Assembly (NCBI GenBank): GCA_013115145.1 | Contig: JAAPAO010000032.1 | Coordinates: forward strand, 58,575-122,574 | Reading direction: 5' to 3' | DNA length: 64,000 nucleotides | Source of the DNA: Perkinsus chesapeaki ATCC PRA-425 | Taxonomy: Eukaryota; Protista; Perkinsozoa | Shown here: positions 15,405 to 63,085 of the stretch, one piece after another | How positions within the stretch are numbered: the first letter of the stretch is position 1 | Layout: each line of letters begins with the position of its first letter | Notes under the pieces: generated by a model | What the model saw: only the letters and a program-made list of their open reading frames with translations | The model's database searches: none | Told to the model about the DNA's origin: nothing | Position numbers and translations under genes: made by a program

Positions 15405-15545
15405 TATTATTATAATGTACTAAAGGAGATATAAATAAAAAACACAATTACAAAAAGATAATATCGCAGAAAAATGATCACTCGTAATCATCATCATCGT
15501 TGTTGTTGTTGCGGACTGTACGATGACCCTCCTCCTTATTCTCCT

Positions 15546-16451
15546 TTACTTGCGACCTACTCCTTTGGTTTCCTTTTTAAGCGGATTTGGCGCATCAGTA
15601 CCGTACAGATGGTGGCCAACATTCCATGTCTGACCGTATCTGTTAAATATAAGATTAACAGAGATAGAAGAGAGAATATAATACTACTTATCCTTGAAGT
15701 GATTCAAGGCTGATGGTTGCCACCAAAAATAGTAGAAAAACATCCTCATCAAAGTGTACCTGATGATGATGTTGAGGTGTGTGGTAAAGTGGTAGTGGTC
15801 GTCGTCTTACACTGCAAGGGTGTTAATAAGCCAAACTCCACACTCCGTCTCGAAGAATCTTTCGAAGATGAAGTTCAACTAAATATAATTATCAATAAGC
15901 GTTAATGATGATATTACTTTATCACTGAGAATGAATTGAACCTCGGGAAAGTAAAAAGGCTTATCAAACTCAGTTAGGAATAATGGGCTACCAGCCAACA
16001 TAAAACGTGATGTCATACTAGATGGTGATACTAAATAATATATATTATAATAATAAATATATATAAGCTTACATGATGATAAGGAGGAGCATTGAGGGCA
16101 ACCACATTTACCAGGGGTATGACCTAACATGATTATATGGAAATATGGTATGATATAATAATTACTCGATTTAATACTTCTGCAGGCTAGGCAGTTACAT
16201 TGTCCTTCTACTTTATGATTTGTCACCGAGAAATCAATGCCCTAATAAGATATTAACCTAATAATTATTAATACTATTTACCGATAAACCAGTGTTAACT
16301 GATGGTAGGGTTGGATGTGATAACAAATGATGAGGAGTCTAAGATGTTAGTAATATTAAACAATTATTATCATTACTGTTGATATACTCCTTGATATCTG
16401 CCAAGCCACAGAAGTAGGTGTACGGCTTATAACACGATGTAAAAGGGACAT
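15546..16451 (-). CDS. Probable nuclear-encoded mitochondrial ATP synthase subunit 8 (myzozoan type) with presequence and Cys-rich insert
   Basis: Spliced product MSLLHRVISRTPTSVAWQISRSIST...MLAGSPLFLTEFDKPFYFPEVQFILSDK|LNFIFERFFETECGVWLINTLAV|YTLMRMFFYYFWW...VGHHLYGTDAPNPL. It resembles, from memory, Toxoplasma subunit 8 (MLAASPMLFTDYD...ERFFENEYG...VGHPRY...NPL). One TM helix. Not database-verified. Confidence 0.72.
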
Positions 16452-16508
16452 AACGACAACAACAACAAACGCCCTTTCTTTAGTGAGGAAGGTCAATTAA
16501 TTACCTTT

Positions 16509-16548
16509 AAAAAGGTCATGCTCGGGATTGAACCGGGGACCTCGGCGC
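16509..16548 (-). other. tRNA 3'-half-like element (variable loop, T-arm, acceptor strand, TTTTT) in a divergent intergenic region
   Basis: Minus strand GCGCCGAGGTCCCCGGTTCAATCCCGAGCATGACC-TTTTT. No matching D-arm or 5' acceptor strand found. Confidence 0.7.
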
Positions 16549-16591
16549 AAAACCACTGATCACTGCTGCTGCAGTCGTTTCAATAGTCGAC

Positions 16592-45387: not shown

Positions 45388-47133
45388 TCAAAGGGCAGGT
45401 AAAACACTGAGCAGCCTATCTCCCTCTCTTTTCCCAAACGTGTGTTCCATTCGCGGATCTCCCAATTTATTCATTCCTCTCAAGAATTCCTCAGCTATGG
45501 CTTTTTCCAGTGAATAATCAATTGGCCTGTAGACTGACAACCTCGGCTCAACAACGGGCTTTTTCGCCTCAACTCGTTCCGTTGCGCAGTGAAGGCCCTC
45601 TCGTAGCCTGTAACACCGGTGATTTCGGTCTTTTCGCTTTGGTCGCATCATAGGGGCCCTCAGCGGCCAGCCCGATGCCTTCTTTGGTTGAGTTCTCTGT
45701 TGCTTTAGACACTCTTCGTATAGCCCTTGTGCGTGGATTATGTTATACCACGGCGGCTCAATACTTCTCCTTGGACCACTGGTGGAAACTACGAAATGTG
45801 ACCTAGGCCGACGTGATGGTGGAGCTTCATTTTTGTACGGGTAATCATCCGGAAGTTTCGCGGTTACAACAACACTTTCTTTGCACTCTGTCATTTGTGT
45901 TCTCGCCTCAGCAGTTTCACTCTCCGATGAGCTCGATGATGAGCTCGATCCCTCGGGTGGTAACACAGAGTTGAGCGACCAAACGCTCGACCCGGCATCG
46001 GAGTCTATATCTACCCACATACTATCATCATTATCATCATCTGGGTCAGGTTCTCTGGTCTCCTCAGTTGCCGACAACTGATTTCCCTTTCTTTTCGATC
46101 TGCCTAACACTTCATCCGTGAGAGCCCTTCTAATAGCTTGGTCGGTTGATAGTGGACCATCCAAGGCAAACGAGTTACTGTGTGATATAGGTTGATCTGC
46201 TTCCTCAACTGGTGGTGGTTCGATTATTATATTTAGACTATCTTCAGCTCGCATGATTATATCATTCTCTATTCTAAGCTTCTTCAGCTTATCCTTTAAC
46301 TCCCCGTGAAGTTCTCTCCTTTCAGCCTCCCAAAAGGCTCGTTTTTTCACTTCGACCGCTACTTGCCGTTTTTTCTTAGTTTTTTTATTTTTCACTGTTC
46401 GTGCGTTACTTTGCAGCTCCATCAGTCGTCTCAACAACTCGGCCATGGTTGATATTTCCTCCGAGTCCCCAAGTGCAATTAGACTTTGTCGTGTTTCCGT
46501 ATCAACTCCTCGAATAAATTGTCCGACTGCCTCCGATTCCGGTAAAAACAATTCGTCTGCGATTTCCAATAATTCATTCGCGTAGTGTTTATGAGACTCT
46601 CCCGGTAGTATAAACCGTTCATACAGGGCTTCCTCGGATAACATACTTTCAATGCATTTATCTGTCATTGCAAACTCTTTCTGTCCGCTTCGCCGCGTCG
46701 ATGCATGCAGTTCGTTAAATTTAGTAACCATTAGCTTCCGTGTTTTATCGTAATCATATGTTCTAATTCCAATGTCGATTGTTAACCAGATGTCCAACTG
46801 AAAGGAAAGACGCTCGATAGGCGACTGAAGGCGTTATTTGCCTTGGTCATATATCAAGCATTGTGATCACCTCGAGTGGCGTCATAAAAAGGGGTATTTC
46901 TCGACACTTGGCAGCTTGACGCTCTTTCCTTGGCACAGTTTGCGTGATATGCTGGCAGGTCTGGAGGGGACAACGGTTTCATTTCATCACACAATTGTTA
47001 ATGTTCATACCTCACTTTTGTCAAATTCTTCGAAAAGTGTTTCGGGGGATCTTTGCTCTTTTCCTGTTGCGAGTGTGAGCTTTGCCGAGGATATTAAGCC
47101 TGTAATATATGATCGTTGTGAGCGTGATGACAT
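45388..47133 (-). CDS. Spliced gene (about 540 aa) with an N-terminal retrotransposon Gag/capsid-like region; no pol nearby
   Basis: Exons 47133-47011, 46960-46871 and 46797-45388 joined by two phase-0 GT-AG introns. Sequence LFEEFD...IPLFMTPLELDIWLTI...DYDKTRKLMVTKF...PGESHKHYANELLEIADEL...AVGQFIRGVDTETRQSL resembles the Ty3/gypsy-type capsid pattern. Recognised by eye only. Confidence 0.6.
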
Positions 47134-47466
47134 TTAACGAATACTGCATAAAGCCAGTAGTCGATGTCCTTTCAACGCTTATGTTTTAGCTAATTTCAAT
47201 ATTTTCGAATTTGACTAGCGCTCGCCCAAAATGTAGTCTCATCGCTCAGCGAGTTGTTTGCCAAATGATGATCTACGCCAATCTCTTGTCTGTTGAGTTG
47301 GAGTTGAGATATCATTATGGACTGAAATTAAACGTGTAAAAGTCAGTTGATGATATCGTAGTCTTTTAGTGTCTTCCCAGAGTCAAGTTGCTTGGGCACA
47401 GTGAAGGGCTCGGGCGGTCATTAAATCAACCTACATTGTATCTTGAAGTATTTTTTCGAGGTTAAA

Positions 47467-50400
47467 ATGTCGCCTCACGTAGAGACACAGTCACATAAGA
47501 CTATCCCAAGCAATACGACTGGGGTGGAACCTTTTGGGACTAGATTCTTAACACCTAACGATTTGAAGAACATTTCATTGTGGAAGAATGGTACGTTATA
47601 AAGCTTCAATGTTTTTACGGTTTTTCTATCAGATATCTATGATAAGTCCCTTTCTACTCGTATCATATCGCCAATAGGGGATTTGTAAGCATTCTAAAGG
47701 AATACCGTTGACGGAAAGATGGGCTATTATTCAAGCGCTAGTTATTATTGTAAATTCTAAAGATTGTAATTATTACGGATAACCTGGATTCAAACCATTA
47801 GAATACAGCACTACTTTTAAAACTTGATTTATATCCTAAACGGAGCTATACAGTAGCTCGTCACAGAATATGCCTTAGTATAGTAATAATTGAAGATCCT
47901 TTCCAATATGGGTAGAATTGATTTCTTCTTGTTGTTGCTTTCAGTCTAGCTAAATACATCCCATCAACCCTAGCACCTAATGTATTAACATTGGCATCAT
48001 TGGTATGTGCATTACAGGCATATTATTATACATTTATGTAAGCTAAACGGGGAAGAGGGTATGAATTAATACCACGTCAAAAGTTCTGTATAAAACTAAA
48101 AAATGCAAGCATTATTAACTTCATCATCAAGTGTTTGTTTTGATTTCTGGCAAAAGATAGTCAACGCTGCTGTAAGCTGTCTAATAGGGTAGATTTGAGG
48201 TCGGTTTTCCTTAGAATGAAATTTATGGACAAATACTCTTCAAAGGGTGATTTTAGGTTTTTCTGGTATATTTCTTCTTACAACTTGGATTTATCTATCA
48301 AGGTTGTTCAATGTTGTTTTGTTCAACTGTTTGATCGACTATCAGGTACCGTAAGACTCATCCATATTTTGCCTCTGCAACTGCTATCGTCATGTTCACA
48401 CTTTATCAGCTATTTGACTGTGTGGATGGTAAACATGCTAAAAATATCAGGTAAGTTAACCCTTGCATTTTATACTGTAAAATAGTAAAATCTGTAGGGA
48501 TATGTTCATTTCAGAAATGAATCACCATTGGGCTACCTATTCAATCAAGCATGCGATAATGTAGCTGTTATATTTATTATTATAACCATGGCTATGCTAA
48601 TGGGATTTGATCCAGATGTGGACTCAGATGCAAGGTGTATCTGGTATGCGGTAATACTAGTATAGGGGAGGTCTAGGGTGTGATTGGGCGGTTTCAGAGA
48701 TCTACTGCTACTTAATGTATATCCGACAGCTATTCCATTCTTTAAATTGCATTTATAGGATTTTAGGAATGTTTTTATCTAGTATCAACTTTTCAATGCT
48801 CAACTTTCTAGTGCTGTTCGGAATATATAGAGTAGGAAATAGATTATGAATATACGTTGAAGGTATTGAACATCATACAATAACGACTAGTGGGAGTTAC
48901 CTAATTTGTATAAAGTACTTTCAACAAGACGAATATTCTTTTTGGGATTGCAACATTCTGGTATCTTATCATCTGTTTCATCACGATAATTTGATAATTC
49001 GATGTTGTTCAGGTCCAAACAGGGCAGTTAGTCTTCCTCTGGTCTCAATTATCGGCATTTAAGAAAGGCTTTATAACTTATGGTCTGTTCACAGGACCAG
49101 GCGAAGCCTTATTTGTATTCCAAATGGCTATTGTTGTTAAAATGTTAACAGGATTTGATTATTTGTAATATAAAGGGAGAAAAATAAATACATTATAACC
49201 ATCCGCATGGCACTAGTAGGGGTGTATACAAATTACTGAGTAATACTATATTCAAGTTGGGACATGATTCAGAAATGGAGAATGTGTAAATTGTATATTC
49301 TTGAAATGCTTATTGATATATTAAGTATGATTGTCCTAATATGTATATTATGTTTCAGTTGGGGTCCTATAAGTAGAGTATTGGCCATGCTACCAGATGC
49401 TTTATCGGGTGACCCTGTTAGTCAAATACATAGTAATAATGGGTGACGAATAATGCATTACCTCGGACCCTTTAATTGCTAGTATATAACATTTTCGTTC
49501 TCTTGCGGAAGATCGGCGGTCCATCATCCTTCTTGTGTTTTCTTGTATAATTTCATTGCTATTTATATTCTGTACTAGTTCCTCGTTTGCGTATCTTTAT
49601 CCTTTATCTTTTGCCTTTCCCTCTTGGGTGGTATAAGTGCTGGTTGCTGCTACGTTTTGGTAGTGAACTTACCGTCAGTCTTGTCATTGTTAAATATTCA
49701 CGTCTTATTCATGACAGTATTATTATACATACGCGGTATTGTTATTATTAATTCCCTATCCTTTCAGCGGTTTACTATGCCTTTCTAATAGCTCTGATAA
49801 TCAGAGTTGCAGTAATAAAGGAGAATCCAGCTACAAGGAATATATTGCTATTTTGTTTACTGTATAGGACAGTACCAAGTAATAAGAGGGGAATACGGTA
49901 TGGCAGCAGCAGCATCAGCAGACTAATCACTTTTACGCAGGCATATAAGATAATCGCAATTATTCCAGTTGCTCCAACAATGCAACGAAGATGTATTATC
50001 TTAGTTGACCCATTCCTACTGCGTAACTTTAACATGTGAAAGTATCTTGAAGTCTAGAGTGCAACTCGGCCAGTTCTATGGTTAAATCGTTTTATGACTA
50101 TTTGCCACAATTTACTGTCGGAATTCGATCGGAAATGTAGGAGGCTTTCTGTAATACATAAGGATTTATAAATCTTAAGTCAAATTGACAGATGGAATAG
50201 ATGCATATGAGGTTGATATTGATGATATTGTTGTTGTTGTCATATCAGGCCTTTTATTCGTACTGGGAATAACAAACTCAACCTCATTAGAATCTATTAT
50301 TTGTGATGGACTCTTTATGAGTATTGTTACAACTGATTTGGGTAATAAGTAAATATGTTATTATTATGATACATTATAACCTTAGTTGTTGCAAGAATGG

Positions 50401-51900
50401 CTCATAGAGATGTTCATGGATGGTTGGTGTTTATGGCTATGGTATCACTGTTGGATAAGCTAGCTATTATAGGTAATAATCAGGGTACTCATTATATAGT
50501 AATAATAAGTTCAATATGAGGGCGCATGGAATGTTAGATGCATAATAGACAATTAGCTCATGCCCTCATTTGACGCCCCATGTAACATATCGTCTGGTAA
50601 GTAGTAGGGCTCATCATGTTAGTATATAGTCCGAAGTTATCGTAATAAACCTATACATTTGCATACCTTACTTTTCCCCATATGGTTTCTGTATAATATT
50701 CTGATATAGGACGTATCGGGAAATGGATATATTATAGATTGTATTTGTCCTAATACATTCCTTCGTTTTCTCTTTCAGCTTGCGCAGTATTCTATTATTG
50801 CTCTATCTTCTATGATATTTGCTCTTATATGAACCTACCAATGTTCACACCTGTCAAGAACGTTTACATTGATGGAGTATTTGACTTGTGCCATTTGGGT
50901 AAGTGGATACGGAAGTAGTACGCAACTCGGTGGAAGATGAATGTGATCATGATCAGGTCATAAGAATCATATTGCACGAGCTCTTAATTACGGTAATAGA
51001 TTGTTTGTTGGTGTTATGAGCGATGAGGATGTTAGAAAGTAATAATAATGCGATGCTACCTTATCATTGGACGGCAAATAACGGGAATTATAGTGAAGGA
51101 TAATTTACTGAGATTTACTGTGAGTCTTATCAGTGGAAAATATTTTTATAAATTTAGTGTATGTAATGTCGATAACTTGTAAGCTTCTTGGGTAGCATAT
51201 CTATATTACCAGGTATAAGCGGGATCCTATTATGACTTTGGAGGAAAGAGTTGCTGAGGTGCAGTCTTTGAGGTAAAGCTGATTAACAACTATCTAATTA
51301 ATTGTTGTTCATCCTTGTTATATTTTATATTGTATATGCTTAATGAATTTGTAAAATATACGTGATATAGTAGAATGTATAATGTGAATACATATAAAAT
51401 ATTATTAGTATTTTGGCCATTATTTAACATTCAAGTGTTCCCAGTTTAATATTAGATAATGAATAACCATGACCCATGATAACCAATACTAACATTACTT
51501 CATTGCCTATATATAATAGTATACCGTAAAATGTCATATATAATGTTAATATTGTTGTTAAAGGGTTTGTATACTGTCCGTTGTTTTATTATTATTATCA
51601 TTCAGGTGTGTCTATAAGGTTATACCAAACGCCCCATGTTTTGGATTGGATAAGGAATTCATAGAGAAGTGGAACATTCATGTTGTATTAGCAAGTCCTG
51701 AATATGACAAGCCAGATGATAACTATTACAGGGTAGTAGGACCGGAAATTAAGGAAATGCAAGTGGGGGCAAGATGAGCAAGATTTTGGTTATGTTAGGT
51801 TCCACGGGAAATGGGTATCTTGCAGATTATGCCACGAACGGAAGGTGTATCGACTTCTGATATTATTAGAAGAATCAAAAATCGCACGGATTTGGACTGA
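47467..51900 (+). CDS. Fusion of a CEPT-type CDP-alcohol phosphotransferase (N) and a choline/ethanolamine-phosphate-type cytidylyltransferase (C)
   Basis: LAPNVLTL; FDCVDGKHAKNIR|NESPLGYLFNQACD; GLFTGPGEA; then in frame ...MNLPMFTPVKNVYIDGVFDLCHLG|HKNH; VGVMSDEDV; YKRDPIMTLEER; PRTEGVSTSDIIRRI. Confidence 0.88.
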
Positions 51901-51934
51901 AGAATTGTTCGTACAGTGAAATTGTGAAATGGGT

Positions 51935-51954
51935 AATCGATCACGTGATCGATT
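51935..51954. other. Perfect 20-bp palindrome AATCGATCACGTGATCGATT
   Basis: Self-complementary, centred on CACGTG, about 35 nt after the stop codon of the phosphotransferase fusion gene. Confidence 0.9.
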
Positions 51955-52336
51955 GCAGGTATTGTTACTTACAATGACATCTGTAATCTCTATTTGCTTG
52001 TTTAATGTGTTGAGTTAGTGCGTTTAATTTCAAAGTCATTAAACGACTTTCATTTTCAGTCAAGCGGCCGGTCCGCATCATCTGGCATAATCAGTGTCCA
52101 GTTTAATATAAGTTCATAGTTCTGTGGTATTAGTCTTACTAACCTAACTTGCTCGAAGGGCTCCTTTTTGCCTATGTAGCTAAGAGTGATGTTCATATAG
52201 GCTAACATTACCAACATGAGCTTTATATTAGATGGCTAATAGTCAATTAATATAGTCGCTTATACCAATAGTTGAGAAGTATTAAATACTTACCCATGCT
52301 ACTAAGTCACTCAGTGGAGAGCTGCTGTTATTGTTG

Positions 52337-55300
52337 ATGATGCCCACCACTACTGGAGCGGCGGCCAATGCTACCTTACCTGCTGCTGTTGCGGATGATA
52401 TAGTTGACTACGGCAAATCAGTGATAGTGAGGTAATTGAAAATGTGAGGTGTGGGAATCGAACCAGAGTCGGTTGGTGTGTAGGGTATCAGACGGCAGTG
52501 CTAAGGTGGTCCGATTGCCTAAAGCAACTCGAGCAGCTGATATTGGTAATGATGGAGAGCATAGTCCAAAAGGGAAGAAACCTAGACCGAAACGGCAGGA
52601 CAATGTTAAGATAGGGAAGACTGTTGTGCCAAGTAATAAAAGGCGGAGGATCGATTCCCGGTCTAGACATTTCATTTTATTAATGCTTACGTAAGAAGTT
52701 GATATCAGTAATAGACGTATGGGCCATACGGTAATGCACTTGGTATTTAACGAAACGAAATTATATTTAATTTGCTTCAGTATTGATAGTGTCCTATGAA
52801 CAGTTACCGCGCTTGTTGGTCGACGTTACGGGTCGACGATACATTATAATGAAGGTGATGGATGGGTGCGAAGTCAATGCAGTAAGGTGAGTAGGGGTAT
52901 TGGCTCAGTTGGATAGTGTTCTGGTTTAGCAATTCAGAGGTATCTGGTTCGATCCCATGTTACGTATTTAGGTATCTACTTCAGAGGATGCAGAGATCGA
53001 TACAACCGTTAATAACCAGTAATAACCCTTTGAGGGCGGCAAGGGCTTATTGGGTTCTTTAAGCCTTCATCATACTCGAAGCTGTTCCAAAGGCGAATTA
53101 TCGGTTACACTTTACAGTAGGGTGTAGGAAAAGGAAGAAGTCAATTTTATGACATTTAAGAACGGCAACGCTCGACTGCACTATTAACTCCAAACGTGCC
53201 TTGAATTGGACTGAGCTTCACCATGTCAACGATGTACGGGTTTTCGTCGAATCCGGTGACAATCGAACATTGTTCCCTCTTAGCCGGGTTGTTCGATGGT
53301 TAGGTTCCTGGAGCAGAAGTCGGAGGACAACCAACCCGACATGGCATCCTCCTCAGCAACTGATGCAGCATTGAAGAGTAAAACCTTTGAAATGAAAACA
53401 CAGTGAGGAGGCTTATCGACAGTTTTATCGACTTTCTATCAGATTCTCACAGGAGAAGTATCTGCGTAAGAAGCAAAAGAAGTATCTGAGAGAAGTGGCA
53501 CTTCTACCATTGAACATCTATAACTACTGTCATTACGCCCCTGGTGCTGCCAATGGCCCTAGGTAGGAGCATGCATATTTTAATACCATATTTCCGTCAA
53601 ATCAGGTTCGATTTAGTAGGGTCAATTCTGCGGCATACATCTCAATGTCAATCTTTGGTTGTTTGGGATGATAGTTGTGGTGGGTTGGTGACCGCAGCTG
53701 CACTTGATAGAGGGCAACATGTGGAAAGATTAGCTAGAGGCAGAGGTAAGGGTTATTATCTAATTGGGTACATTACAGTGTGTCCCGAATAGTACGAGTA
53801 CAGCGTGCCTCCAATAATGTGGTCTCAATCGTGGATAATTCGGTCAATGAAACGAGCCATCACCGAGGGATCTAAAGCTAGAGAGAGGTTAATCTTTGAC
53901 GTTCAGATATCTCATCGTTATGAACAATAGTATCCTAACTTGTAGTGTAGAAGAAGGATGAGATTAATGATGTGAATGGCATTATTTGTGTTAAGGTACA
54001 ACACCCGATGCAGCGATCACTGAGTTGGGAATCCCCAGTGAAGTTGTTGGATCATTATTATCAAAAACACAGTTAGTAGACGAAGAGGAGGAAGAGAGTA
54101 AACAAGATGATTATGTGGGGGATGATGGTCTAAGGCATTATCATAAACGAGCTAGGAAGAGATCGGTAGGTCGTGGGTTCGAATCCTGGCAGAGGTAAAT
54201 GCATTATTATTATTATTATTGACGTTACTGCGGTACACTGAGGTTGATATGTGCTTTTTATCCATCTAGCTTGCTCAGTAAAGTCCAATAGGCTTAGGAA
54301 TAACTCAACAGCAGCCTTCAATTCTCCAGCTTCGCCGGGAGAGCATCATCTTGACCCTATTCGAATGCACACAATGGATCGGTCTGTCTATCGATGCGCT
54401 TTCCCCGGCCAGGCTTTATGCACAATTGTCACGCGCTCTGGTTGTTACGTAATAAATCGCATGTGGATGTAAGCCTTTCTTCATATTATCATTTATTGGC
54501 GAATATCGATCATTATCATACGCTCATAAGGTCATGATAGCCTTATCAGGTTGTTGGCAATCCAGTTATCAGTCCAGATGGAGGAGTGGTGGTTTGGATG
54601 GATCTGGCCATTTCTGGTGGAACTAAGGAATTCTCCGAAGTCACATCGGCTGTTATGGAGCGTAGGTTCTTCCATCCGAAAGGTCGTGGGTTCGATCCCG
54701 GTATTGTCAGAAATAACACCATACTGCGGCACGTTGGTGGTGTTGGTTCGGCATATGGATTTGGTACAGAGACTTCAACGTGAACTGATTAAATCTGAGG
54801 AATGGATTAATGTATCCCTTACAGAGCCGATAGTTCGAGAACATCAAGTTCTACCGAATAGAACCCATCCGGTAGGAAGTGAGGTGGTCTGCCTCCCAAG
54901 TTCAAAGGAGATGTTCAAAAACTCATCGGACTTTGGTTTTTAGAGGATTGCTGGATTCAATCATTGCCGCGCTGTTGAATTGATACTCGATTATTATTTG
55001 TATTCCTTTGACATTGTCGTTGTTGCATTCACTCCATCATTAGTTTTTAGGGAATAGTTAACTTACTCAGTAAACTATATTGAAGACGTTGTGATGATAG
55101 TGAAACTTTACAGATTTAGGCCAACCTTTGGTTTAGTGTATCCATCTGTTTAATGGTATATTACGAAGGCATGCATTCTCACATCAGCTTCACATCAGAA
55201 AATCTTTTTATAATGCAGAGTAGGGTTAATAGGGTCCTCTCCTACGTTTGTCATGACGAAGCATTTTGCAGATAATGCAATCTGCCACCAACTCAGCCCA

Positions 55301-55430
55301 AGGATTCCTACTAACAGCAACCAAGGTTGTGGCCCCCTCTAAACAGAGTGATAGTATAGTGGAGGATACTCCAGCAGATAAGCGACCAAAAGTTGATGAT
55401 GATGATGCTGGTGCATCTGCCAACGTTTGA
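52337..55430 (+). CDS. TRM6: tRNA (adenine-58-N1) methyltransferase non-catalytic subunit TRM6/GCD10, multi-exon
   Basis: VKIGK; LVGRRYGST; SKTFEMKTQ|FSQEKYLRKKQKKY; LVVWDDSCGGLVTAA; REHQVLPNRTHP|IMQSATNSAQGFLLTATKV. Confidence 0.9.
52432..52483 (-). other. TRM6 intron 1 (52 nt) with an antisense tRNA 3'-half-like motif and TTTT
   Basis: Antisense reading GACTCTGGTTCGATTCCCACACCTCACA-TTTT. Confidence 0.6.
52894..52966 (+). pseudogene. Degenerate full-length tRNA-Ala(AGC)-like sequence filling an 85-nt TRM6 intron (52887-52971)
   Basis: GGGGTAT TG GCTC AGTTGGATA GTGT T CTGGT TTAGCAA TTCAG AGGTA TCTGG TTCGATC CCATG TTACGTA: canonical arm spacing, A and B boxes and an AGC anticodon loop, but mismatched acceptor and D stems. 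Confidence 0.7.
54166..54196 (+). other. tRNA T-arm motif between two candidate 5' splice sites in TRM6
   Basis: GTAGGTCGTGGGTTCGAATCCTGGCAGAG-GTAAAT, with GT at 54166 and 54195. It could be intronic or exonic (VGRGFESWQR). Confidence 0.55.
54662..54710 (+). other. TRM6 49-nt intron with a sense tRNA 3'-part-like motif
   Basis: GTAGGTTCTTCCATCCGAAAGGTCGTGGGTTCGATCCCGGTATTGTCAG. Removing it joins ...SAVME-Q-ITPYCGTLVV in the TRM6 frame. Confidence 0.65.
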
Positions 55431-55533
55431 TGTTGTTCAGCAGTTTAACGTAAAGTTTCTCAATACACTGGTAATTTTCGTTTCGGTATGTTTTGTATTT
55501 TTCTAAGGTAATTTTTCTGTTTATTTTTTGGCA

Positions 55534-57301
55534 ATGGCTAAAGCTCTTGTTTGCATTAAACGTGTTGTTGATTATGCTGTTAAAGTGAGGGTAAGTGTGA
55601 CGGTGTGACGTGGGTTCTGGTGTCATGTGAATTGACCAGGTGATGGCCAGTAAAGCTGGTGTAGACATAGCCAATGTGAAACATAGCGTTAATCCATTCT
55701 GCGAGATCGCTGTTGAGGTACGAGGTATCCCAGGTTGAAGCTTGCTCATCATATTCATTAGGAAGCATTAAGAATGAAGGAAGCCGGTAAACTGTCTGAG
55801 GTTGTGGCGGTCTGTGCTGGTCCTGATAAGTAAGTCAATATCACGTTTTCTCCGCTCCCGGAGGAAGGATTCTTGATCTTACAGTTCTCAATGTTTTTGC
55901 TATTGAATATCCCTTTCTTTATAGTAGGATATAGCTTTACATATATTATTATTGGACTTTTTCAGATGATCCTCATTTTCTGCAAGGTTTATAGAATAGT
56001 ACAACCCCCTCGCTCATTTACACTCGTCTGCTTCATATCTGTATCTTTTGGGTAGACGTATATATTCAGGGCATCGGAGCAGCTTCGTCAAGCATTAGCT
56101 ATGGGATGCGATAGAGCGGTGAGCCGGGATAGAACCTGTGCAGGAAAGTGTATCATGGGTTTTACTTAGATACATCTACAGACACATCTTAGAACTGATC
56201 AGGAACTTCAGCCCTTGACTGTTGCTAAATTGATTAAGAAGATCGTTGAGAGAGAGGTAAGCATCTCCGTATGATACATTCAAGCAGCTCATACATTGCA
56301 ATGTGGAGTCCACACCTTTTCATGTGTTAAGCAATATCGCAACCGGTACGACCACAATGTCCGCAGTGCGAACAAGAAGATATTATTGGGAACGAAAACA
56401 TGTATCACCCCCAAAATAGAGTACACAGTCGTCGAGGTGTGAAATTATCGTATAGAGATATGACTTGTGTGTTTGCCATACATCATTACATTTCATATGT
56501 CATGATGATGAGGTAATTAAGGTTGAATAATCCTACATGTAATCCAATACACACAGTTTTCCGCAGCACTGCTTGTTGAAGTGAATCTAGTATTGTTAGG
56601 ATCCATTATTGGTGTTAATGGGTAAACAATCCATTGATGGTGATATGGGACAAACCTGTCAGCTTTTGGCTGGAATGTTAAGCTGGCCTCAAGCTACCTG
56701 TGCTAGCAAGGTAGAGCCCACACAATTGCTTGCACGCATGCACATGCATTTTCAGATCGCTATATCGGATGATAGCACAGAGTTGACGGTAGATAGGGAA
56801 GTTGATACTGGAATTCAGCAGGTGACATCTTTATTAACTCCGAATTGCATAATTCTTCTCGGCAGGTCCAAATACCACTCCCAGCAGTCCTGTCAACTGA
56901 TCTCAGGCTCAACACCCCGCGGTGAGTTTCCAAACTTTCGCCCTCGATTTGCCACGACACAATTCCGCACAAGTTGGATTATATAGGTATGCTACATTAC
57001 CAAACTTGATGAAGGCCAAAAAGAAGCCAATTGAAGTTATACCTGCTGAAAGTCTTGGAGTGGATCTTCAATCTAATCTACAGGTTAGTGTACTACCATC
57101 CACACTCATTCTAGCAATCAATTAATAATGTGATACAGCGGATATACCCAACTCAATGATAAAGGTGTAGATCTGCTTCGACTTAGTTCCTTCCATCAGG
57201 TTACTTCTGTAGAGGAGCCGCCGGCGAGGAAGGCTGGAGTCATGCTTGATAATGTCGATGAACTTGTGAACAAGCTCAAGAATGAGGCGAAGGTCCTTTA
57301 A
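55534..57301 (+). CDS. ETFB: Electron transfer flavoprotein beta subunit, multi-exon
   Basis: MAKALVCIKRVVDYAVKVR; NPFCEIAVE|EALRMKE; ALAMGCDRA; LMGKQSIDGDMGQT; VDREVDTG; DLRLNTPR|YATLPNLMKAKKKPIE; EPPARKAG. Confidence 0.95.
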
Positions 57302-57608
57302 TTCCGAGGCGCGCAAGAAGTCAGATAATCGTCAGTTTTTATTATGCAGAGTTACTCGGCGTGATTGATGTTTTCGGAGTGAAATGTTTGTTATTGTGTT
57401 GCTCGACACGGGCTTGAAATTCCGAGCTACAAACGCTCCATACCGTATCAGCCGCTGCATTGCCAACTTCTGAGCACGACGCGGTGGCGACTATATTGTG
57501 CTGCTGTATTCCTACCTGTACGCATGCGTTGAGTTCTGCCAACATGAAGAGGCGCTTACGAAGCTGCTTCACATCATTGCGTTGAATGTATCAGTTTTGT
57601 TACTTAAG

Positions 57609-59123
57609 ATGATGCCTGATTTTTACGAAGAGCCTGTGGCTGGTGGGCTGAGTGAAAAGTTATGGACGGCGAATCAAGACTTGGCAATGAAGAGTCTACA
57701 TCATCCTTTTGTTCAAGGCCTTGGTGATGGTACTTTAGACCCAGTTGCCTTCAAGACCTATATGGAACAGGATTCTCTTTATCTTAATGGTTATTTACGA
57801 GGCCTTTCGTATTGTGTGGCTAAGAGCAACATCAATGCTACTGGCACCGAGCTACTTACACTACTCGATGGAGTTAAAGATGAGTTGGAATCTTGTCACC
57901 AGCATTATGTCGATAACCCGGAGGCATCTGGTCCTGAGGCAGCTTGTAAGAAGTACGTAGACTTCCTATTGGATATTGGCAGATCTGACCGTGGTCCAGC
58001 TGTTATGGTTGCTGCTGTTATCCCTTGTGCAAGACTATATGCCTGGCTTGGTAGGGAACTAACCAAGGGAAGGGTGATACCTGAGGAGCATCCCTTCAGA
58101 AGATGGCTTCAAAGCTACTCTGATAAACCTATTAATACATCAGCAATGACACTAGAAACTCTGTTGGATAAGCAAGTTGAGGAATGTGAATATTCAGAAG
58201 TAGCCCAAGCTTACAGAAGGGCCATGGAGCTTGAGTATGACTTCTTCGATTCCTTCGGTGGTCATCTAGGCCGTTCGAGCGATGAGGTTGTGACAGTTCC
58301 CACAGTGCTGGTTATTAGTGGTAGCGACTCTGGTGGTGGTGCTGGCCATCAGGCTGACTTGAAGACACTAGAAGCCCTTGGGGTGTATTCGACTTCTGCT
58401 TTAACGTCCATTACTGCTCAAAACAGCAAAGGTGTTCAGAAAATCCAAACGATTGATAAGGGGATGCTGGGTGATCAGATAGATTCCGTTATATCTGATT
58501 ATAAGGTTAATGTTGTTAAACTAGGACTGGTGCCCACTGCTGGGCAACTTGGTATTATAGCAGACAAGCTCAACGGCCTCCCTATGGTTGTTGATCCAGT
58601 CTTGGTGGCTACTAGTGGAGACGATCTGGTCGCTGCTAAAAATGCTGATGATGTGTTGGCGATGTACAAGGAGCGTATTTTCCCTTTGGCCACAATAATA
58701 ACTCCGAATCTTCCCGAAGCCCAGAAGCTGTTGGGGAGGAAAGAGATCACGGGTGTCTACGAGGCCAGGGCGGCTGCCGAGGCTCTGGCACAGTACGGGT
58801 CGAAATTCGTGCTGGTTAAAGGCGGTCATGATAAGGCAGAACCAGACACTTGTCGAGATGTTCTTTATGATAGAGAACATGACCAATTTTATGAGTTCAA
58901 CAATAAAAGGATTTCTACCAATAATACCCATGGCACTGGTTGTACACTGGCCAGTGCCATATCTGGTTTTATGGCGCGCGGTTTCCCTGTCCCAGACGCT
59001 GTGCAGCATGCCATAAAATATCTCCATGAAGCTATCCTTCGGTCCTGTAATGTTCCCATTGGTCAAGGCTCTAACAGACCACTGGTTCATTCTGTTAATA
59101 GCGTATGGGCACATTATTGCTAG
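57609..59123 (+). CDS. thiD: TenA (thiaminase II / amino-HMP hydrolase) - ThiD (HMP/HMP-P kinase) fusion, intronless
   Basis: TenA: HPFVQGLGDGTL, YMEQDSLYL, catalytic VIPCARLY, LEYDFFD. ThiD: ISGSDSGGGAGHQADLKT, VVDPVLVATSG, ITPNLPEA, VLVKGGH, NTHGTGCTLASAI. Likely start at 57609 or 57612, not the 57498 ORF start. Confidence 0.95.
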   Translation: MMPDFYEEPVAGGLSEKLWTANQDLAMKSLHHPFVQGLGDGTLDPVAFKTYMEQDSLYLNGYLRGLSYCVAKSNINATGTELLTLLDGVKDELESCHQHYVDNPEASGPEAACKKYVDFLLDIGRSDRGPAVMVAAVIPCARLYAWLGRELTKGRVIPEEHPFRRWLQSYSDKPINTSAMTLETLLDKQVEECEYSEVAQAYRRAMELEYDFFDSFGGHLGRSSDEVVTVPTVLVISGSDSGGGAGHQADLKTLEALGVYSTSALTSITAQNSKGVQKIQTIDKGMLGDQIDSVISDYKVNVVKLGLVPTAGQLGIIADKLNGLPMVVDPVLVATSGDDLVAAKNADDVLAMYKERIFPLATIITPNLPEAQKLLGRKEITGVYEARAAAEALAQYGSKFVLVKGGHDKAEPDTCRDVLYDREHDQFYEFNNKRISTNNTHGTGCTLASAISGFMARGFPVPDAVQHAIKYLHEAILRSCNVPIGQGSNRPLVHSVNSVWAHYC

Positions 59124-59261
59124 AAGCGTGTTTCAAATGTTGTTGAGTGAATCTATTGTGGTTATCACTTTATCTATTTACTGCGATTGTTGTACACTTC
59201 CTCACAGTTGTTGCGTTCAACGTTGTATTGTTATTGTTAAAAGATTTCTGACTTTGTTGGT

Positions 59262-60749
59262 ATGTCGGCGGCATCGGAGGTATATAAAGTGTACGCATGT
59301 ACAAATGGAAAGTTTAGCTTGGAGATCCCTCGTATGGTGGCATCAGCTATTGCCGGAGGGGCTACCTGTGTCCAGCTCAGGCTCAAAGATGTGAGTACTG
59401 GTGATTACATTAGAATGGCACAAGAAACCAAGAAGGTTATGCCAAGCCATGTACCCCTTATTATCGATGACCGTGTTGACGTCTGCCTTGCAAGTGGTGC
59501 TGATGGTGTACATGTTGGTGATTCTGATATGCCTGTTAAAGATGCTCGATCTATCATAGGCCCCAATAGAATCCTTGGGGTATCAACTTATGGTCGTTAT
59601 GAGGATGCTATTACTGCTATTAATGATGGTGCTGATTATATTGCTACTGGTGCTGTCTATCCGACTGTCACCAAGCTTGATGCGGTGGCTAAAGGGCTTG
59701 AACAGATAGATGTCCTTAAACAAGCACTAAACGAATGTGGGAAGTCCCTGCCAATAGTAGCAATTGGTGGCATCAATCCAGTAACAGCAGTCGATTGTGT
59801 TCAACGAGGTGCTGATGGAGTATGTGCTGTGAGTCAGATTTTTGACACATGGGAGAAACCAGAATCACGCGCCAGGAAATTTCTCAAGGCCTACTGCTCT
59901 GGTATGGAGATAAGGTCCAAGGCGAGCAGCCATGACTTATATGATAATAAGAAAGTGATCGATCTATGGCAGAAGTTGGCTATTCAGAGCCCATTGACAC
60001 AATGCATCACCAACTATGTCTCCATGAACTTTATGGCCAATAGTCTTTTAGCAGCTGGTGCTTCACCTGCTATGGTCCATGCCCAAGAAGAGGCTCCTCA
60101 GTTCCTTGAGGTTGCCTCTGCTCTCAATGTCAATATTGGTACCCTGTCATCTTATTGGGCTGATTCTATGCGATTATGCGCTAAGAAAGCTGCGGAGATT
60201 GGCAAGCCATGGGTGTTGGATCCTGTGGCTGCTGGTGCGACATCTTTCCGTACAGGTGTGGCCACTGAACTGCTTCGGTATAAACCTACTGTTCTAAGAG
60301 GGAACGGCGGCGAGATCCTCGCTCTGGCTGGAGAAACTGGTGCTGTGAAGGGCGTTGATTCTAAAGTTACAAGCGATGCGGCTCTTGATGCCGCCAAGGA
60401 AATCGCAAAGAAGTTCAACACTGTTGTCTGTATATCCGGTTCTACCGACTTTGTGACGGATGGTAATAGAGTAGTTGAAATATGCCACGATGTACCGATG
60501 CTTCCCATGATCACTGCAACTGGCTGCACCCTCAGTGCTTTAATGACAGCATTTTGCGCTGTTGCCAGCGATCCCTTCGATGCTGCTGTTGCTGCCTGTG
60601 CTGGATGGTCTCTAGCAGCCCAAGAGGCTTCTATAACGGCTCAAGGTCCAGGCAGCATATCAGTTGAGCTACTTAACATATTGCCACGACTAAGAGATCC
60701 TACTTGGCCTTCGTGGAAGCGACTAGCTATTTTTGAACGTCGGCGCTAA
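59262..60749 (+). CDS. thiE: ThiE (thiamine-phosphate synthase) - ThiM (hydroxyethylthiazole kinase) fusion, THI6-like order, intronless
   Basis: ThiE: VQLRLKD, IIDDRVDV, DGVHVGDSDM, GAVYPTVTK, VAIGGI. ThiM: ITNYVSMNFMANSLLAAGASPAM, VNIGTL, VLDPVAAGATSFR, LRGNGGEI, TATGCTLSA. Confidence 0.96.
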   Translation: MSAASEVYKVYACTNGKFSLEIPRMVASAIAGGATCVQLRLKDVSTGDYIRMAQETKKVMPSHVPLIIDDRVDVCLASGADGVHVGDSDMPVKDARSIIGPNRILGVSTYGRYEDAITAINDGADYIATGAVYPTVTKLDAVAKGLEQIDVLKQALNECGKSLPIVAIGGINPVTAVDCVQRGADGVCAVSQIFDTWEKPESRARKFLKAYCSGMEIRSKASSHDLYDNKKVIDLWQKLAIQSPLTQCITNYVSMNFMANSLLAAGASPAMVHAQEEAPQFLEVASALNVNIGTLSSYWADSMRLCAKKAAEIGKPWVLDPVAAGATSFRTGVATELLRYKPTVLRGNGGEILALAGETGAVKGVDSKVTSDAALDAAKEIAKKFNTVVCISGSTDFVTDGNRVVEICHDVPMLPMITATGCTLSALMTAFCAVASDPFDAAVAACAGWSLAAQEASITAQGPGSISVELLNILPRLRDPTWPSWKRLAIFERRR

Positions 60750-61338
60750 GAATAAGAATATGTTGGGTTCATTGTTTGCTTATTATGACAGTGTTGTGTG
60801 ACAGTGTGAGCAAACCTACAGCATTAAGTCAATTAAAATCGTCAAACACCATTCTCAGTTGTGGCAACCCGATATTTTTCACACATGGGAGCTCGTAAAT
60901 AATTCGTTCCCTCGGGTGTCCCTCGCAGGAACTGGTAGACTAGCTTAGCAAGCATATGTACCTAGTGAAGAACCCTATCGCAGGGCTCTGTCCTACGTGG
61001 TCTGTAGCCTTCTCATGGAGCCCACAGGCTTGCCCCGCGAAGACAGACTCGTGGCAGGAACCTTTTTTGGAGACAGGGGGCTCCGGTCCATCTGCGTGTG
61101 CGTGCAGGTTTCCGCGCTCCTCGCGGACAGTGGGGGCTGCATCTTGAGGGAGGGATTTTCTCCCCTGATTGCGTGACATGGAGATACACCTTGGCCTCAA
61201 TTGAGCTTCTGCTTATAACTTCGAATCGATCATTGCGGGCCTTTTTCTCCGATCTGATCTCGTATCTGTCCTATAGTGCACATTATAATAGGGCTTTTAG
61301 GAGGGGGCGAGTGCCTTTCATACCTTTATAAGGCATCA

Positions 61339-63085
61339 ATGGCTGTTAATAGTCTTCTTCTTGTGAGTATCTGCGCACTTCAGTGTGTATGTGGAAGGAT
61401 CCCTGAATTTACTATCGACCATATTGACAGCTTTGGAGCTGAGATTAAGGAGGCTGTCTCACGTGAAGGTGGGCTCACACTTAACATCATTTCCTCTTAT
61501 TATCTCTTTCAAGGTGCATTCCTTCTCTCGGGACTATCTCAAACATTCTCGAAGTCCTATAAGCAGTTGGCCACCGAACTCCCGAAGTGTTCTGAATCTG
61601 ATGCCGACAGCGTGGATACCCTCGACGATGCCACCATTCGTATGACTTACGCTAAACGTGAGAGCATTTTACCTCGGTCCCAAAACTAGTGTATTCGGGT
61701 AGATTCGATCGATTCTGCCGAGTCGGTATTCCTCGGACGCAACAGCTGCCCACGGCACCTCAGCGAGCATATCGCCATGCTATCCGACGAGCTTGATTTC
61801 GTCGGAAAGCTAGTCGCCGATAAGTTATCAGATGTAAGTCCAGCGGCTTGGCGGGATTGTTCCTTTCTGTTTTATTTGCGCTCGTAGTGTAACGGTATCA
61901 TACAAGCTTCCCATGCTTGTGACCCGGGTTCGACTCCCGGCGGGCGCAGCTTATTGCTGCCAGGTAATGACAGTCCAACACCATCATAAGGATCTGCAAT
62001 CCTTCGGTGATATTCTTACAAGTGGACGAAGCCATCATTTGGACCACATGCACGTATATAAGCTGCACAATGAGTCAACGAGCCCTATCACGGTAGCATA
62101 TCTGTTGTGGTGGACAGTCGGAGGGCAATGTCATGGTGGCTGACGCAGTGCATTATACGGCGATTTCAGGCTTCCGCCAGAGCAACCTCCACCCTCACAT
62201 GGCACACTGATCAAGGAGCTTTCTTGCTCCTAGTTCTCCCTCCAGGTGACCAAAGCTTTCATTATAGGGATCACCAGGAAGCTGAGGTCAAAAGATTCTC
62301 GTATTTAGCCTTCCTATTCATTATGATCATTTCCAGATGACCTTAACCGTTCCAGATGATGGCGAAATGAGGGTTCTTGTCGTCATGGGGAATACGTTGA
62401 ATAGCAACTTCTTCAGTAAGGCTCCTGCTCGACTTTTAGATAGGCAGTAGGCGCCGTCTCATGTATTTCAATCTTATACTTTTACCTATAATCTGTTGCT
62501 CATTAGCCGTTTCCTTGGCCAATACGTATTAGGTGAAATAAGCTCGTAGGTAAGTTAACGTTCTGCGATTAGGAACCAACCCTCCTATCCGTCCTCTGCC
62601 TCATGCAGTCTACATGAAAGGCTATGCAGCTGAAGGGAACCCACGCGTCATTCTCGGCAGGATGTTCCTGCTGCCGAGCAATATGATAGATTCCTACACT
62701 GGTGTGACCTATGATGGGTGGAGCAAACAGGTTCTGGTAGAGAATCCTATCGCTGATACGAAAGAGATTATAGCCGAGAAGAGGAGATTGGGTACGTGGA
62801 AATATGATTAATTTCGATATCCACTGCTCATTATCAGAAACCAACTGTAACTCGAGTACTATTCTATGTTGGATGAGATGTATGGAGAACACTTGTTCGA
62901 GCGGCCAGGTGCCAGTATGCTGGAATTACACCGGCCAGGATATTTGCCCAAATGATGGGGGAATGCACCCCGAATGTCGAGTCAACTGCCAAGCCTCAGA
63001 GGAGAAATCTATTGCATCTATCAAAACACAGAGCAACTTTGTGCTTATTGTAGTCTTTATTATATACGTTGTTACTACCTGGTAG
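61339..63085 (+). CDS. Secreted, membrane- or GPI-anchored 2-oxoglutarate/Fe(II) oxygenase-like protein with a C-terminal Cys-rich domain
   Basis: Signal peptide MAVNSLLLVSICALQCVCG; HLDHMHVY; HxD motif WHTDQG; distal His PLPHAV; RVILGRMFL; KRRL|ETNC...CWMRCM...; hydrophobic C-terminus. Confidence 0.7.
61877..61947 (+). tRNA. tRNA-Gly (anticodon CCC), intact, inside intron 61834-61962 of the oxygenase gene
   Basis: GCGCTCG TA GTG TAACGGTAT CAT A CAAGC TTCCCAT GCTTG TGAC CCGGG TTCGACT CCCGG CGGGCGC A: all four stems pair, 71 nt. Confidence 0.96.

Follow-up and report, generated by a model that had tools for sequence, protein, structure and literature searches.

The window analysed here, a 64,000-nt stretch of the Perkinsus chesapeaki genome, carries two adjacent genes, denoted A and B, that share one orientation and each consist of a single unbroken ORF, gene A starting with an ATG at 57609 (Table 1). 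Both were collinear over their full length with family models and with Perkinsus orthologues. An initial annotation of the window had described a TenA–ThiD fusion of about 505 aa beside a ThiE–ThiM fusion of 495 aa; the measured lengths are 504 and 495 aa, and Pfam searches confirmed the domains. Between them, the two genes encode in 3.1 kb a predicted assembly route for both halves of the vitamin, from HMP or aminopyrimidine and from thiazole to thiamine phosphate.

Table 1. Features of the thiamine gene pair and its upstream neighbours (positions in the window)
Feature	Position	Strand	Evidence
TRM6 (Gcd10p family), multi-exon, context	52397..55331	+	tblastx blocks collinear with P. marinus Gcd10p gene
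ETFB (electron-transfer flavoprotein), multi-exon, upstream neighbour	55534..57307	+	about ten tblastx blocks collinear with P. marinus ETF gene
Gene A, intronless TenA–ThiD fusion, 504 aa	57609..59123	+	single ORF; PF03070 and PF08543
TenA domain (predicted thiaminase II / aminopyrimidine aminohydrolase), aa 25–215, Cys-type TENA_C	57681..58253	+	PF03070 (TENA_THI-4), E 3.4e-21
ThiD domain (predicted HMP / HMP-P kinase), aa 240–486	58326..59066	+	PF08543 (Phos_pyr_kin), E 2.1e-79, profile positions 1–242 of 246
Spacer A–B, 138 bp	59124..59261		stop of A at 59121–59123, ATG of B at 59262
Gene B, intronless ThiE–ThiM fusion, 495 aa	59262..60749	+	single ORF; ThiE and ThiM models above cut-off
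ThiE domain (predicted thiamine-phosphate synthase), aa 11–193	59292..59840	+	PF02581 (TMP-TENI), E 8.3e-50, profile positions 2–180 of 180
ThiM domain (predicted hydroxyethylthiazole kinase), aa 237–477	59970..60692	+	PF02110 (HK), E 1.1e-76, profile positions 2–244 of 247

The pair differs from its neighbours in intron content. In a tblastx comparison with P. marinus, TRM6 and ETFB each resolved into about ten short conserved blocks, and we consider both genes intron-rich because these blocks are interrupted by unconserved stretches, a picture that comes from block-by-block comparison. The same comparison gave one alignment block each for genes A and B. Across the Perkinsus loci compared, introns were present in 13 of 14 other called genes and in none of the TenA–ThiD or ThiE–ThiM genes; the contrast is real, with a small sample behind it. 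These results bear out the description of the genes as co-oriented, 138 bp apart and intronless beside intron-rich ETFB and TRM6. The spacing had also been called operon-like, which does not set the pair apart: 138 bp is short, yet inside the range of ∼100–300 bp that separates the co-oriented genes of this locus.

The TenA domain of gene A scored 76.4 bits against the TENA_THI-4 family model (PF03070; gathering cut-off 22), and its score of 79.2 with TIGR04306 fell under the equivalog cut-off of 130, for which reason we treat it as a divergent member of the family. The TENA_C and TENA_E classes are told apart by an active-site Cys equivalent to Cys135 of Bacillus subtilis (PMC5635689). When aligned with PDB structures, Cys140 of gene A (motif IPCARLY) lined up with the Cys in TenA from B. 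subtilis (LLPCYWLY; 1to9) and from Helicobacter pylori (2rd3, 3ibx). Two further motifs are conserved in the domain, QD..Y (Asp55) and, at the C terminus, ExEYxF (aa 207–213). By its active-site Cys, the domain is predicted to be a Cys-type TENA_C enzyme. The ThiD half scored 252.1 bits with the equivalog-domain model TIGR00097 (cut-off 204.95), and its closest solved structures are phosphomethylpyrimidine kinases (E = 9e-63), with which it aligns collinearly. Gene A is 75%–79% identical to its P. marinus and P. olseni orthologues.

Gene B exceeded the curated cut-offs for both of its halves, with scores of 161.8 for the ThiE model TIGR00693 (cut-off 145.1) and of 263.6 and 293.2 for the ThiM models TIGR00694 (256.4) and NF006830 (180), and it is 83%–84% identical to its Perkinsus orthologues. 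The four enzyme assignments made at the outset (TenA, ThiD, ThiE and ThiM) are therefore upheld by Pfam domains and, for ThiD, ThiE and ThiM, by curated cut-offs.

These assignments suggest a simple route. The Cys-type TenA of gene A would release HMP from aminopyrimidine breakdown products (and from thiamine) by hydrolysis, and the adjoining ThiD would phosphorylate HMP twice to HMP-PP. The ThiM half of gene B would convert the thiazole alcohol HET to HET-P, and its ThiE half would join HMP-PP and HET-P into thiamine phosphate. The four-domain content supports the logic of the initial annotation, in which the four enzymes together salvage pyrimidine and thiazole; the activities themselves, and the use of host-derived precursors, are predicted from sequence. 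The pair supports precursor salvage and does not imply exclusive dependence on it, as opposed to de novo synthesis of HMP or thiazole. A TPP riboswitch has been reported on an intronless SSSP transporter gene of P. marinus (McRose et al. 2014, PMC4260697 supplement), which fits a lifestyle of precursor uptake; our literature search returned no description of Perkinsus thiamine genes apart from this riboswitch.

The synteny check proposed for other perkinsids came out in favor of the pair. A tandem, intronless pair was present in P. marinus on GG680918 (gap of 99 bp), again as a second, diverged and likewise intronless copy on GG676180 (91 bp), and in P. olseni (98 bp), which has two extra TenA–ThiD paralogues that are intronless too. 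The linkage to ETFB was also corroborated: the order TRM6-ETF-A-B is repeated on a 1.8-Mb P. marinus scaffold, and each of the two P. marinus copies has ETF directly 5′ of gene A. Among the Perkinsus orthologues pN was 0.06–0.15 with synonymous sites saturated, and dN/dS was 0.03–0.09 where computable; the pair is under strong purifying selection. Its composition is like that of its neighbours, with a GC3 of 0.39–0.41 for genes A and B compared with 0.46 for one ETFB exon. The tandem intronless arrangement predates the split of the sampled Perkinsus species and was present in their common ancestor, and the adjacency may have been kept because it is helpful to co-expression.

We inferred trees for single domains and for concatenated domain pairs from the best 120 matches per search, a sample from which apicomplexan and chromerid sequences are absent. 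In the concatenated TenA + ThiD tree, Perkinsus was sister to oomycetes (92/90), and both belonged to a group of TenA-first proteins with 17 rows (99/97). An AU test on these concatenated domains rejected a grouping of Perkinsus with the one sampled TenA–ThiD protein from a bacterial operon (P0061; p = 0.0038), and the TenA tree held a 98% aLRT split between the TenA domains of the two. ThiD alone did not reject the link to P0061 (AU p = 0.126) and marginally rejected an exclusive group of Perkinsus, oomycetes and the Polarella clade (AU p = 0.028). Concatenation with TenA was needed because the ThiD-only tree is too weak to separate eukaryotic from bacterial affinity, and owing to these two ThiD results we regard the deep placement of the pair as soft.

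The oomycete sister proteins (from Pythium, Lagenidium, Aphanomyces, Saprolegnia and Achlya), annotated merely as phosphomethylpyrimidine kinase, share the TenA-first order, and their ThiD half is 43%–49% identical to that of gene A. They differ in carrying a linker of 100–150 aa, and in Pythium the gene is interrupted by introns, with no ThiE–ThiM neighbour within 6 kb. Fungal THI20/THI21/THI22 (PDB 3rm5) also unite the two domains of gene A in one polypeptide, the N-terminal domain of THI20 matching its ThiD (E = 6e-46) and the C-terminal domain its TenA (E = 1.6e-06), but there ThiD comes first. TenA-first proteins were split from the ThiD–TenA proteins of fungi and actinobacteria in both the TenA tree (98% aLRT) and the concatenated tree (99/97). 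Both its domain order and its position across the latter split place gene A outside the THI20 family.

For gene B, the concatenated ThiE + ThiM tree placed Perkinsus in an eight-row clade of ThiE–ThiM proteins (99/92) that includes a eukaryote (GCA_014466315.1). This clade sits inside a larger one of 16 rows (95/93), to which green algae, land plants and Amoebidium also belong, and a 99/94 split parts the Perkinsus protein from bacterial fusions. The ThiE-only and TenA-only trees were concordant with the concatenated ones, and a protein of the rhizarian Paulinella joined the ThiE clade (95%). The comparison with fungal THI6 drawn in the initial annotation holds for architecture: THI6 has the same two activities in the same ThiE-then-ThiM order, and the Candida glabrata protein (PDB 3nl2) gave one collinear alignment with aa 25–485 of gene B (E = 1.8e-50). 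It does not extend to lineage. Gene B belongs to a separate eukaryotic clade that branches within green-algal and plant ThiM, on the opposite side of the 99/94 split from THI6 of the basidiomycete Pterulicium and from Naegleria, and one clade uniting it with these was rejected (AU p = 0.0005, with one fungal sequence sampled and the group defined after inspection of the tree). Identity of genes A and B to any bacterial protein was at most ∼50% per domain. On these placements, both genes appear to be of eukaryotic type and not the product of a recent bacterial operon transfer.

Bacterial salvage operons (tenA-thiD-thiM-thiE) resemble the pair in that the four activities adjoin on one strand, and some bacteria have the same fusions as Perkinsus, with both fusion orders represented. 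Examples are two metagenomic loci, one encoding a TenA–ThiD fusion, ThiM, ThiE and Dxs (L013) and the other ThiW, ThiM, a ThiE–ThiM fusion and ThiD (L015). The Perkinsus genes differ in their eukaryotic phylogeny, in their intron-rich eukaryotic neighbours and with respect to the TPP riboswitch: a scan with RF00059 at its gathering threshold yielded nothing across the 64,000-nt window, allowing E values up to 5 in 56500–62500 brought up no match, and the orthologous loci of P. marinus and P. olseni had none either. We do not class the pair as a bacterial thi operon, since neither the riboswitch leader nor the bacterial ancestry of such operons was found in these searches and trees. In the eukaryote GCA_014466315.1 (locus L008), the ThiE–ThiM gene of the eight-row clade adjoins a gene of TenA–ThiD order at 72 bp, and both are intronless; there, however, the genes are convergent (tail to tail) where the Perkinsus pair is tandem, and the TenA–ThiD protein is very divergent and sits on a long branch. 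Beside the L008 pair, a "Thi4" match came from the Rossmann fold of an amine oxidase and does not denote a thiazole synthase. A search for linkage of TenA–ThiD to ThiE–ThiM came up empty for Pythium (L005), for the contigs L006 and L007 of the Polarella clade and, by gene calls, for L017.

Several accounts of where the pair came from can be weighed against these data. Bacterial contamination or a chimeric assembly would explain the absence of introns and nothing else, and we treat it as excluded for any practical purpose, because the same ETFB-linked gene order stands on the P. marinus scaffold; the order with intron-rich eukaryotic neighbours recurs in independent assemblies of three species, and composition resembles that of the neighbours. 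Had Perkinsus recently acquired a bacterial tenA-thiD-thiM-thiE operon by horizontal transfer, both the missing introns and the close spacing would be accounted for. Horizontal acquisition was one of the two origins that the initial annotation had proposed. Operons of this content do exist, as L013 and L015 illustrate, and the ThiD-only test tolerates a grouping with P0061. Such a transfer is nevertheless very improbable given that both genes fall inside eukaryote-dominated clades, that the P0061 grouping is rejected once TenA is included and the TenA domains are themselves split, and that ThiE–ThiM is parted from the bacterial fusions. The low bacterial identity, the neighbour-like composition and the TPP riboswitch searches point the same way, and the pair is older than the split between three species that have reached saturation at synonymous sites.

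An ancient transfer from another eukaryote, either an algal endosymbiont or through exchange with stramenopiles, followed by vertical descent in Perkinsus, deserves more weight, although we still think it unlikely. It would suit the company that gene B keeps with green algae, plants and Amoebidium, the concatenated tree in which gene A has oomycetes as its sister group and not the Polarella (dinoflagellate) clade, and the intronless state of both genes in an intron-rich genome. The topologies are, however, also compatible with vertical ancestry in SAR (stramenopiles, alveolates, rhizarians) combined with losses and long branches, and taxon sampling is thin; the Paulinella protein hints at a SAR-wide distribution, and the Pythium orthologue has introns and is unlinked to ThiE–ThiM. 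The deeper origin may be vertical SAR descent, an old endosymbiotic transfer or a eukaryote-to-eukaryote transfer. Whichever applies, the pair is best read as an old two-gene cluster of eukaryotic type, putatively for thiamine precursor salvage. We assign a probability of roughly 0.8 to its being a conserved cluster of eukaryotic-type bifunctional enzymes whose predicted activities lead from thiamine precursors to thiamine monophosphate.

The spacer offers some clues to expression. It measures 91–99 bp in the loci of P. marinus and P. olseni and is poorly conserved except for ∼25 nt 5′ of the ATG of gene B, where an AG after a T-rich run, ∼20 nt 5′ of the ATG, is conserved in four out of four sequences and is a candidate splice acceptor. 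An Rfam search of the spacer matched no family, and its 138 bp showed no trace of poly(A). Perkinsus is known to use a 22-nt spliced leader in trans-splicing (PMC9399869). No relic of this leader was found near the genes with up to three mismatches allowed, and its 10-nt 3′ half had no match within 12 kb of them; seven one-mismatch matches to this half all lay far from the genes. A search for RNA sequencing runs turned up none that covers the stretch, and two small runs under the same species label gave no reads that aligned to it.

Genes A and B, perhaps together with ETFB and TRM6, could be transcribed as one polycistronic precursor that is resolved by spliced-leader trans-splicing and polyadenylation, forming a eukaryotic operon. 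At least four co-oriented genes (TRM6, ETFB, A and B) follow one another here, and the gaps of ∼100–300 bp between coding sequences leave little room for a 3′ UTR, a promoter and a 5′ UTR; the conserved AG and the occurrence of trans-splicing in the genus are consistent with such processing. Against this, the literature examined shows no polycistronic transcription in Perkinsus, and short gaps, being general to the locus, are uninformative about the A–B pair, which leaves the idea doubtful. Its more specific form, a true operon of the pair (possibly with ETFB) from which gene B would be released by trans-splicing at that AG, is slightly more doubtful still; if true, it would mean co-ordinated expression of a complete vitamin-salvage route in a myzozoan. 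Retro-processing through recycled cDNA, as described in dinoflagellates, offers another explanation for the lack of introns, and the copies may have been made jointly, in which case the intronless pair would descend from a dicistronic RNA of this kind that was reverse-transcribed. The absence of introns from all Perkinsus TenA–ThiD genes (the two extra P. olseni paralogues included) and ThiE–ThiM genes, set against their presence in nearly all the other genes, is what this account would predict, and it too could draw on the trans-splicing known in Perkinsus. The searches for a leader relic and for poly(A) in the spacer yielded neither, a weak objection since an old event would have erased such marks. 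We judge retro-processing somewhat less probable than either form of the operon.

All four enzymes are textbook ones, and the P. marinus proteins have long stood in public databases under generic names, making the gain a modest one. It consists of a clean annotation of a predicted thiamine-phosphate assembly route in 3.1 kb, as a tandem pair that all sampled members of the genus keep and of which P. marinus has two copies. The ThiE–ThiM fusion of gene B stands for a lineage apart from fungal THI6, and gene A for a lineage of TenA-first proteins that Perkinsus shares with oomycetes. For the polycistronic transcription of tightly packed, co-oriented Perkinsus genes, the pair provides a convenient and functionally linked test case. 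It also leads to the prediction that Perkinsus, as parasites of shellfish, can grow if supplied with precursors or breakdown products of thiamine instead of the intact vitamin, using a pathway that is, to our knowledge, absent from the animal host.

The two genes of interest, a TenA-ThiD fusion (gene A) and a ThiE-ThiM fusion (gene B), lie 138 bp apart. The long ORFs, Pfam and NCBIfam together confirmed the initial annotation of two adjacent fusion genes carrying four enzyme domains (see table). ThiD, ThiE and ThiM all scored above the curated cut-offs of the NCBIfam equivalog-domain models. The TenA domain of A fell below its cut-off (79 bits vs. 130 for the strict TenA equivalog) and is therefore a divergent member. 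In PDB alignments, Cys140 of A (motif IPCARLY) matches the active-site Cys of the TenA proteins from B. subtilis and H. pylori, and the QD..Y motif is conserved, as is a Glu-containing motif at the C terminus; the domain can thus be assigned to the Cys-type class (TENA_C in the usage of Gutowska et al. 2017, PMC5635689). Gene B aligned with the Candida glabrata THI6 structure in one collinear stretch. The sequence gives good support to the functional reading, in which the four predicted activities would convert salvaged pyrimidine and thiazole to thiamine phosphate.

Features of the thiamine gene pair, its neighbors and comparable loci
Feature	Location	Strand	Description
TRM6	52397-55331		~ten short conserved blocks (tblastx vs. 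P. marinus)
ETFB	55534-57307		~ten short conserved blocks (tblastx vs. P. marinus)
ORF A (TenA-ThiD)	57609 (conserved ATG) to 59123 (stop)	+	504-aa long ORF
TENA_THI-4	ORF A aa 25-215		Pfam
Phos_pyr_kin	ORF A aa 240-486		Pfam
ORF B (ThiE-ThiM)	59262-60749	+	495-aa long ORF
TMP-TENI	ORF B aa 11-193		Pfam
Hydroxyethylthiazole kinase	ORF B aa 237-477		Pfam
ETF / TenA-ThiD / ThiE-ThiM, P. marinus	L001:6155-11098		GG680918
ETF / TenA-ThiD / ThiE-ThiM, P. marinus	L012:2312-7488		GG676180
Extra TenA-ThiD paralogues, P. olseni	L010:3416-6880, L009:1-1445		63-67% identical to gene A
ThiE-ThiM and divergent TenA-ThiD-order gene	L008:6001-9729		GCA_014466315.1; tail to tail, 72 bp apart
TenA-ThiD (~320-aa linker), then stand-alone ThiE	L014:3235-6383		Logan contig, GC 0.59; 57 bp apart
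Bacterial operon TenA-ThiD / ThiM / ThiE / Dxs	L013:879-5527		
Bacterial operon ThiW / ThiM / ThiE-ThiM / ThiD	L015:372-4073		

The pair is conserved across Perkinsus. The closest matches of A and B were Perkinsus proteins (75%-84% identity, none identical), which makes the source a Perkinsus distinct from P. marinus and P. olseni. A synteny comparison recovered the A-B tandem in P. olseni (gap of 98 bp) and twice in P. marinus. The 1.8-Mb P. marinus scaffold GG680918 carries, on one strand, a Kennedy-pathway fusion, TRM6, ETF, A and B, separated by CDS gaps of 187, 131, 178 and 99 bp; the same ETF-A-B linkage on so long a scaffold disposes of the earlier caveat about contamination. With the order shared in P. 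marinus and the A-B pair in P. olseni, contamination or chimerism is excluded. The second P. marinus set (ETF, A and B on GG676180; A-B gap of 91 bp) has other upstream genes, with MBOAT in place of TRM6 before the block. The two copies look like an old segmental duplication and not alleles, given protein identities of 83% (A) and 90% (B) and a dS of 1.4-1.8. P. olseni has two extra tandem, intronless TenA-ThiD paralogues beside adenylosuccinate lyase, with no ThiE-ThiM partner. Between species, synonymous sites were saturated and pN was 0.06-0.15; dN/dS was 0.03-0.09 where computable. An intact tRNA (62 bits; 61878-61948, plus strand) lies ∼1.1 kb downstream of B in the window and at the matching relative position in P. 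marinus (L001:12052-12122) and P. olseni (L003:5199-5269).

The description of an intronless cassette beside intron-rich ETFB and TRM6 was also borne out. Compared block by block with their P. marinus counterparts by tblastx, A and B each aligned as a single block, in contrast to the fragmented neighbors. We further called a gene intronless if its length equaled three times (residues + 1). Across the fetched Perkinsus loci every TenA-ThiD and ThiE-ThiM gene qualified, as against one of 14 other called genes (a LicD gene), so the contrast is real, albeit in a small sample. Elsewhere in the window, a 394-aa single ORF with a Tub (tubby) C-terminal domain (14220-15404, minus strand; E 6e-26) is also apparently intronless.

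Judged by their sequences, A and B are eukaryotic-type genes. The TenA-first and ThiE-ThiM domain orders are found in eukaryotes and bacteria alike, so order alone decides nothing on origin. The former is known from oomycetes and from several other sequences; one of the latter, the TenA-ThiD protein P0061, belongs to a clear bacterial operon (L013; overlapping genes, GC 0.36). Another bacterial operon (L015) contains the ThiE-ThiM fusion P0154; both orders therefore arose in bacteria too. Such shared fusions would fit a recent transfer of a bacterial operon into Perkinsus, one form of the horizontally acquired cassette that had been proposed, and on ThiD alone a Perkinsus-P0061 link was not rejected (AU p 0.126). 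The ThiD-only tree grouped Perkinsus, with moderate support, mainly with eukaryotes (fungi, plants, oomycetes and a clade that contains the dinoflagellate Polarella), and an exclusive group of Perkinsus, oomycetes and the Polarella clade was marginally rejected (AU p 0.028). The TenA-only and ThiE-only trees and the concatenates agreed on a eukaryotic placement. In the TenA-only tree a long branch (98% aLRT) set all TenA-first proteins other than P0061, those of Perkinsus and oomycetes among them, apart from P0061 and from fungal and actinobacterial ThiD-TenA proteins. In the careful-search tree of concatenated TenA+ThiD, Perkinsus was sister to oomycetes (92/90) within a 17-row set (99/97), and its union with P0061 was rejected (AU p 0.0038).

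For concatenated ThiE+ThiM, again with a careful search, Perkinsus fell within an eight-row clade of ThiE-ThiM fusions (99/92), nested in a 16-row clade with green-algal, land-plant and Amoebidium ThiM (95/93); the ThiE-only tree gave these eight rows again, joined by a protein of Paulinella. A 99/94 split parted the 16-row clade from the bacterial fusions and from basidiomycete THI6 and Naegleria; B resembles fungal THI6 in architecture but belongs to a separate lineage. Placing Perkinsus in one clade with the fungal and Naegleria fusions was rejected (AU p 0.0005; one fungus sampled, group named post hoc). No compositional signal of foreign origin was seen in A and B: their GC3 was 0.39-0.41, compared with 0.46 for one exon of ETFB, and beyond 52 kb the local GC was 0.42-0.50. 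Given these trees and the composition, recent transfer of a bacterial operon is not supported; on this sampling, vertical descent, an old endosymbiotic transfer or acquisition from a different eukaryote may each account for the eukaryotic-type genes in Perkinsus. Across the window, local GC falls to 0.30-0.37 near 50-52 kb, and GC3 of long ORFs is 0.19-0.28 at 9.5-24 kb (9511-23704) and 0.39-0.46 at 45-61 kb (45388-60749).

The operon-like A-B gap is the smallest within each locus, but short gaps are shared by the whole region: the distance between co-oriented neighbors is ∼100-230 bp in P. marinus and P. olseni and ∼200-300 bp in the window, and close head-to-tail packing is thus a regional property, not peculiar to the pair. 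What is non-random is the adjacency of two genes from one short pathway, kept through speciation and segmental duplication; as only a few of some 20,000 genes belong to thiamine metabolism, we estimate chance adjacency to be on the order of 1 in 1000 or less. Co-transcription of A and B as an operon resolved by spliced-leader trans-splicing is one hypothesis. The spacer is poorly conserved apart from ∼25 nt preceding the ATG of B, where an AG follows a T-rich run in four of four sequences, a candidate splice acceptor. Origin of the intronless genes as retro-copies is another hypothesis; a search with the Perkinsus spliced-leader sequence (PMC9399869) found no relic near A or B. A search of public RNA runs turned up none that covers this stretch. 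No TPP riboswitch was found in the window or orthologous loci; the one reported for P. marinus (McRose et al. 2014, PMC4260697) belongs to the 5′ UTR of an SSSP transporter gene that lacks introns.

Linked thiamine genes also occur outside Perkinsus. The pair on a eukaryotic, intron-poor contig (L008), whose ThiE-ThiM belongs to the eight-row clade, is arranged tail to tail, unlike the Perkinsus tandem. A second pair, adjoining a CCB2/CCB4 (cytochrome b6 maturation) gene on a contig that may be algal (L014), has a ThiE that shares 48% identity with the ThiE part of B yet falls outside the Perkinsus ThiE group in the tree. Pythium oligandrum and the Polarella-clade contigs showed no linkage. 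Together with Perkinsus, the two pairs indicate that thiamine genes cluster repeatedly in eukaryotes, the tandem form being so far confined to Perkinsus. The A-B pair is a neatly organized addition to known enzyme families and to the known phenomenon of small eukaryotic metabolic gene clusters, and would be useful for experiments on whether Perkinsus transcribes genes polycistronically.
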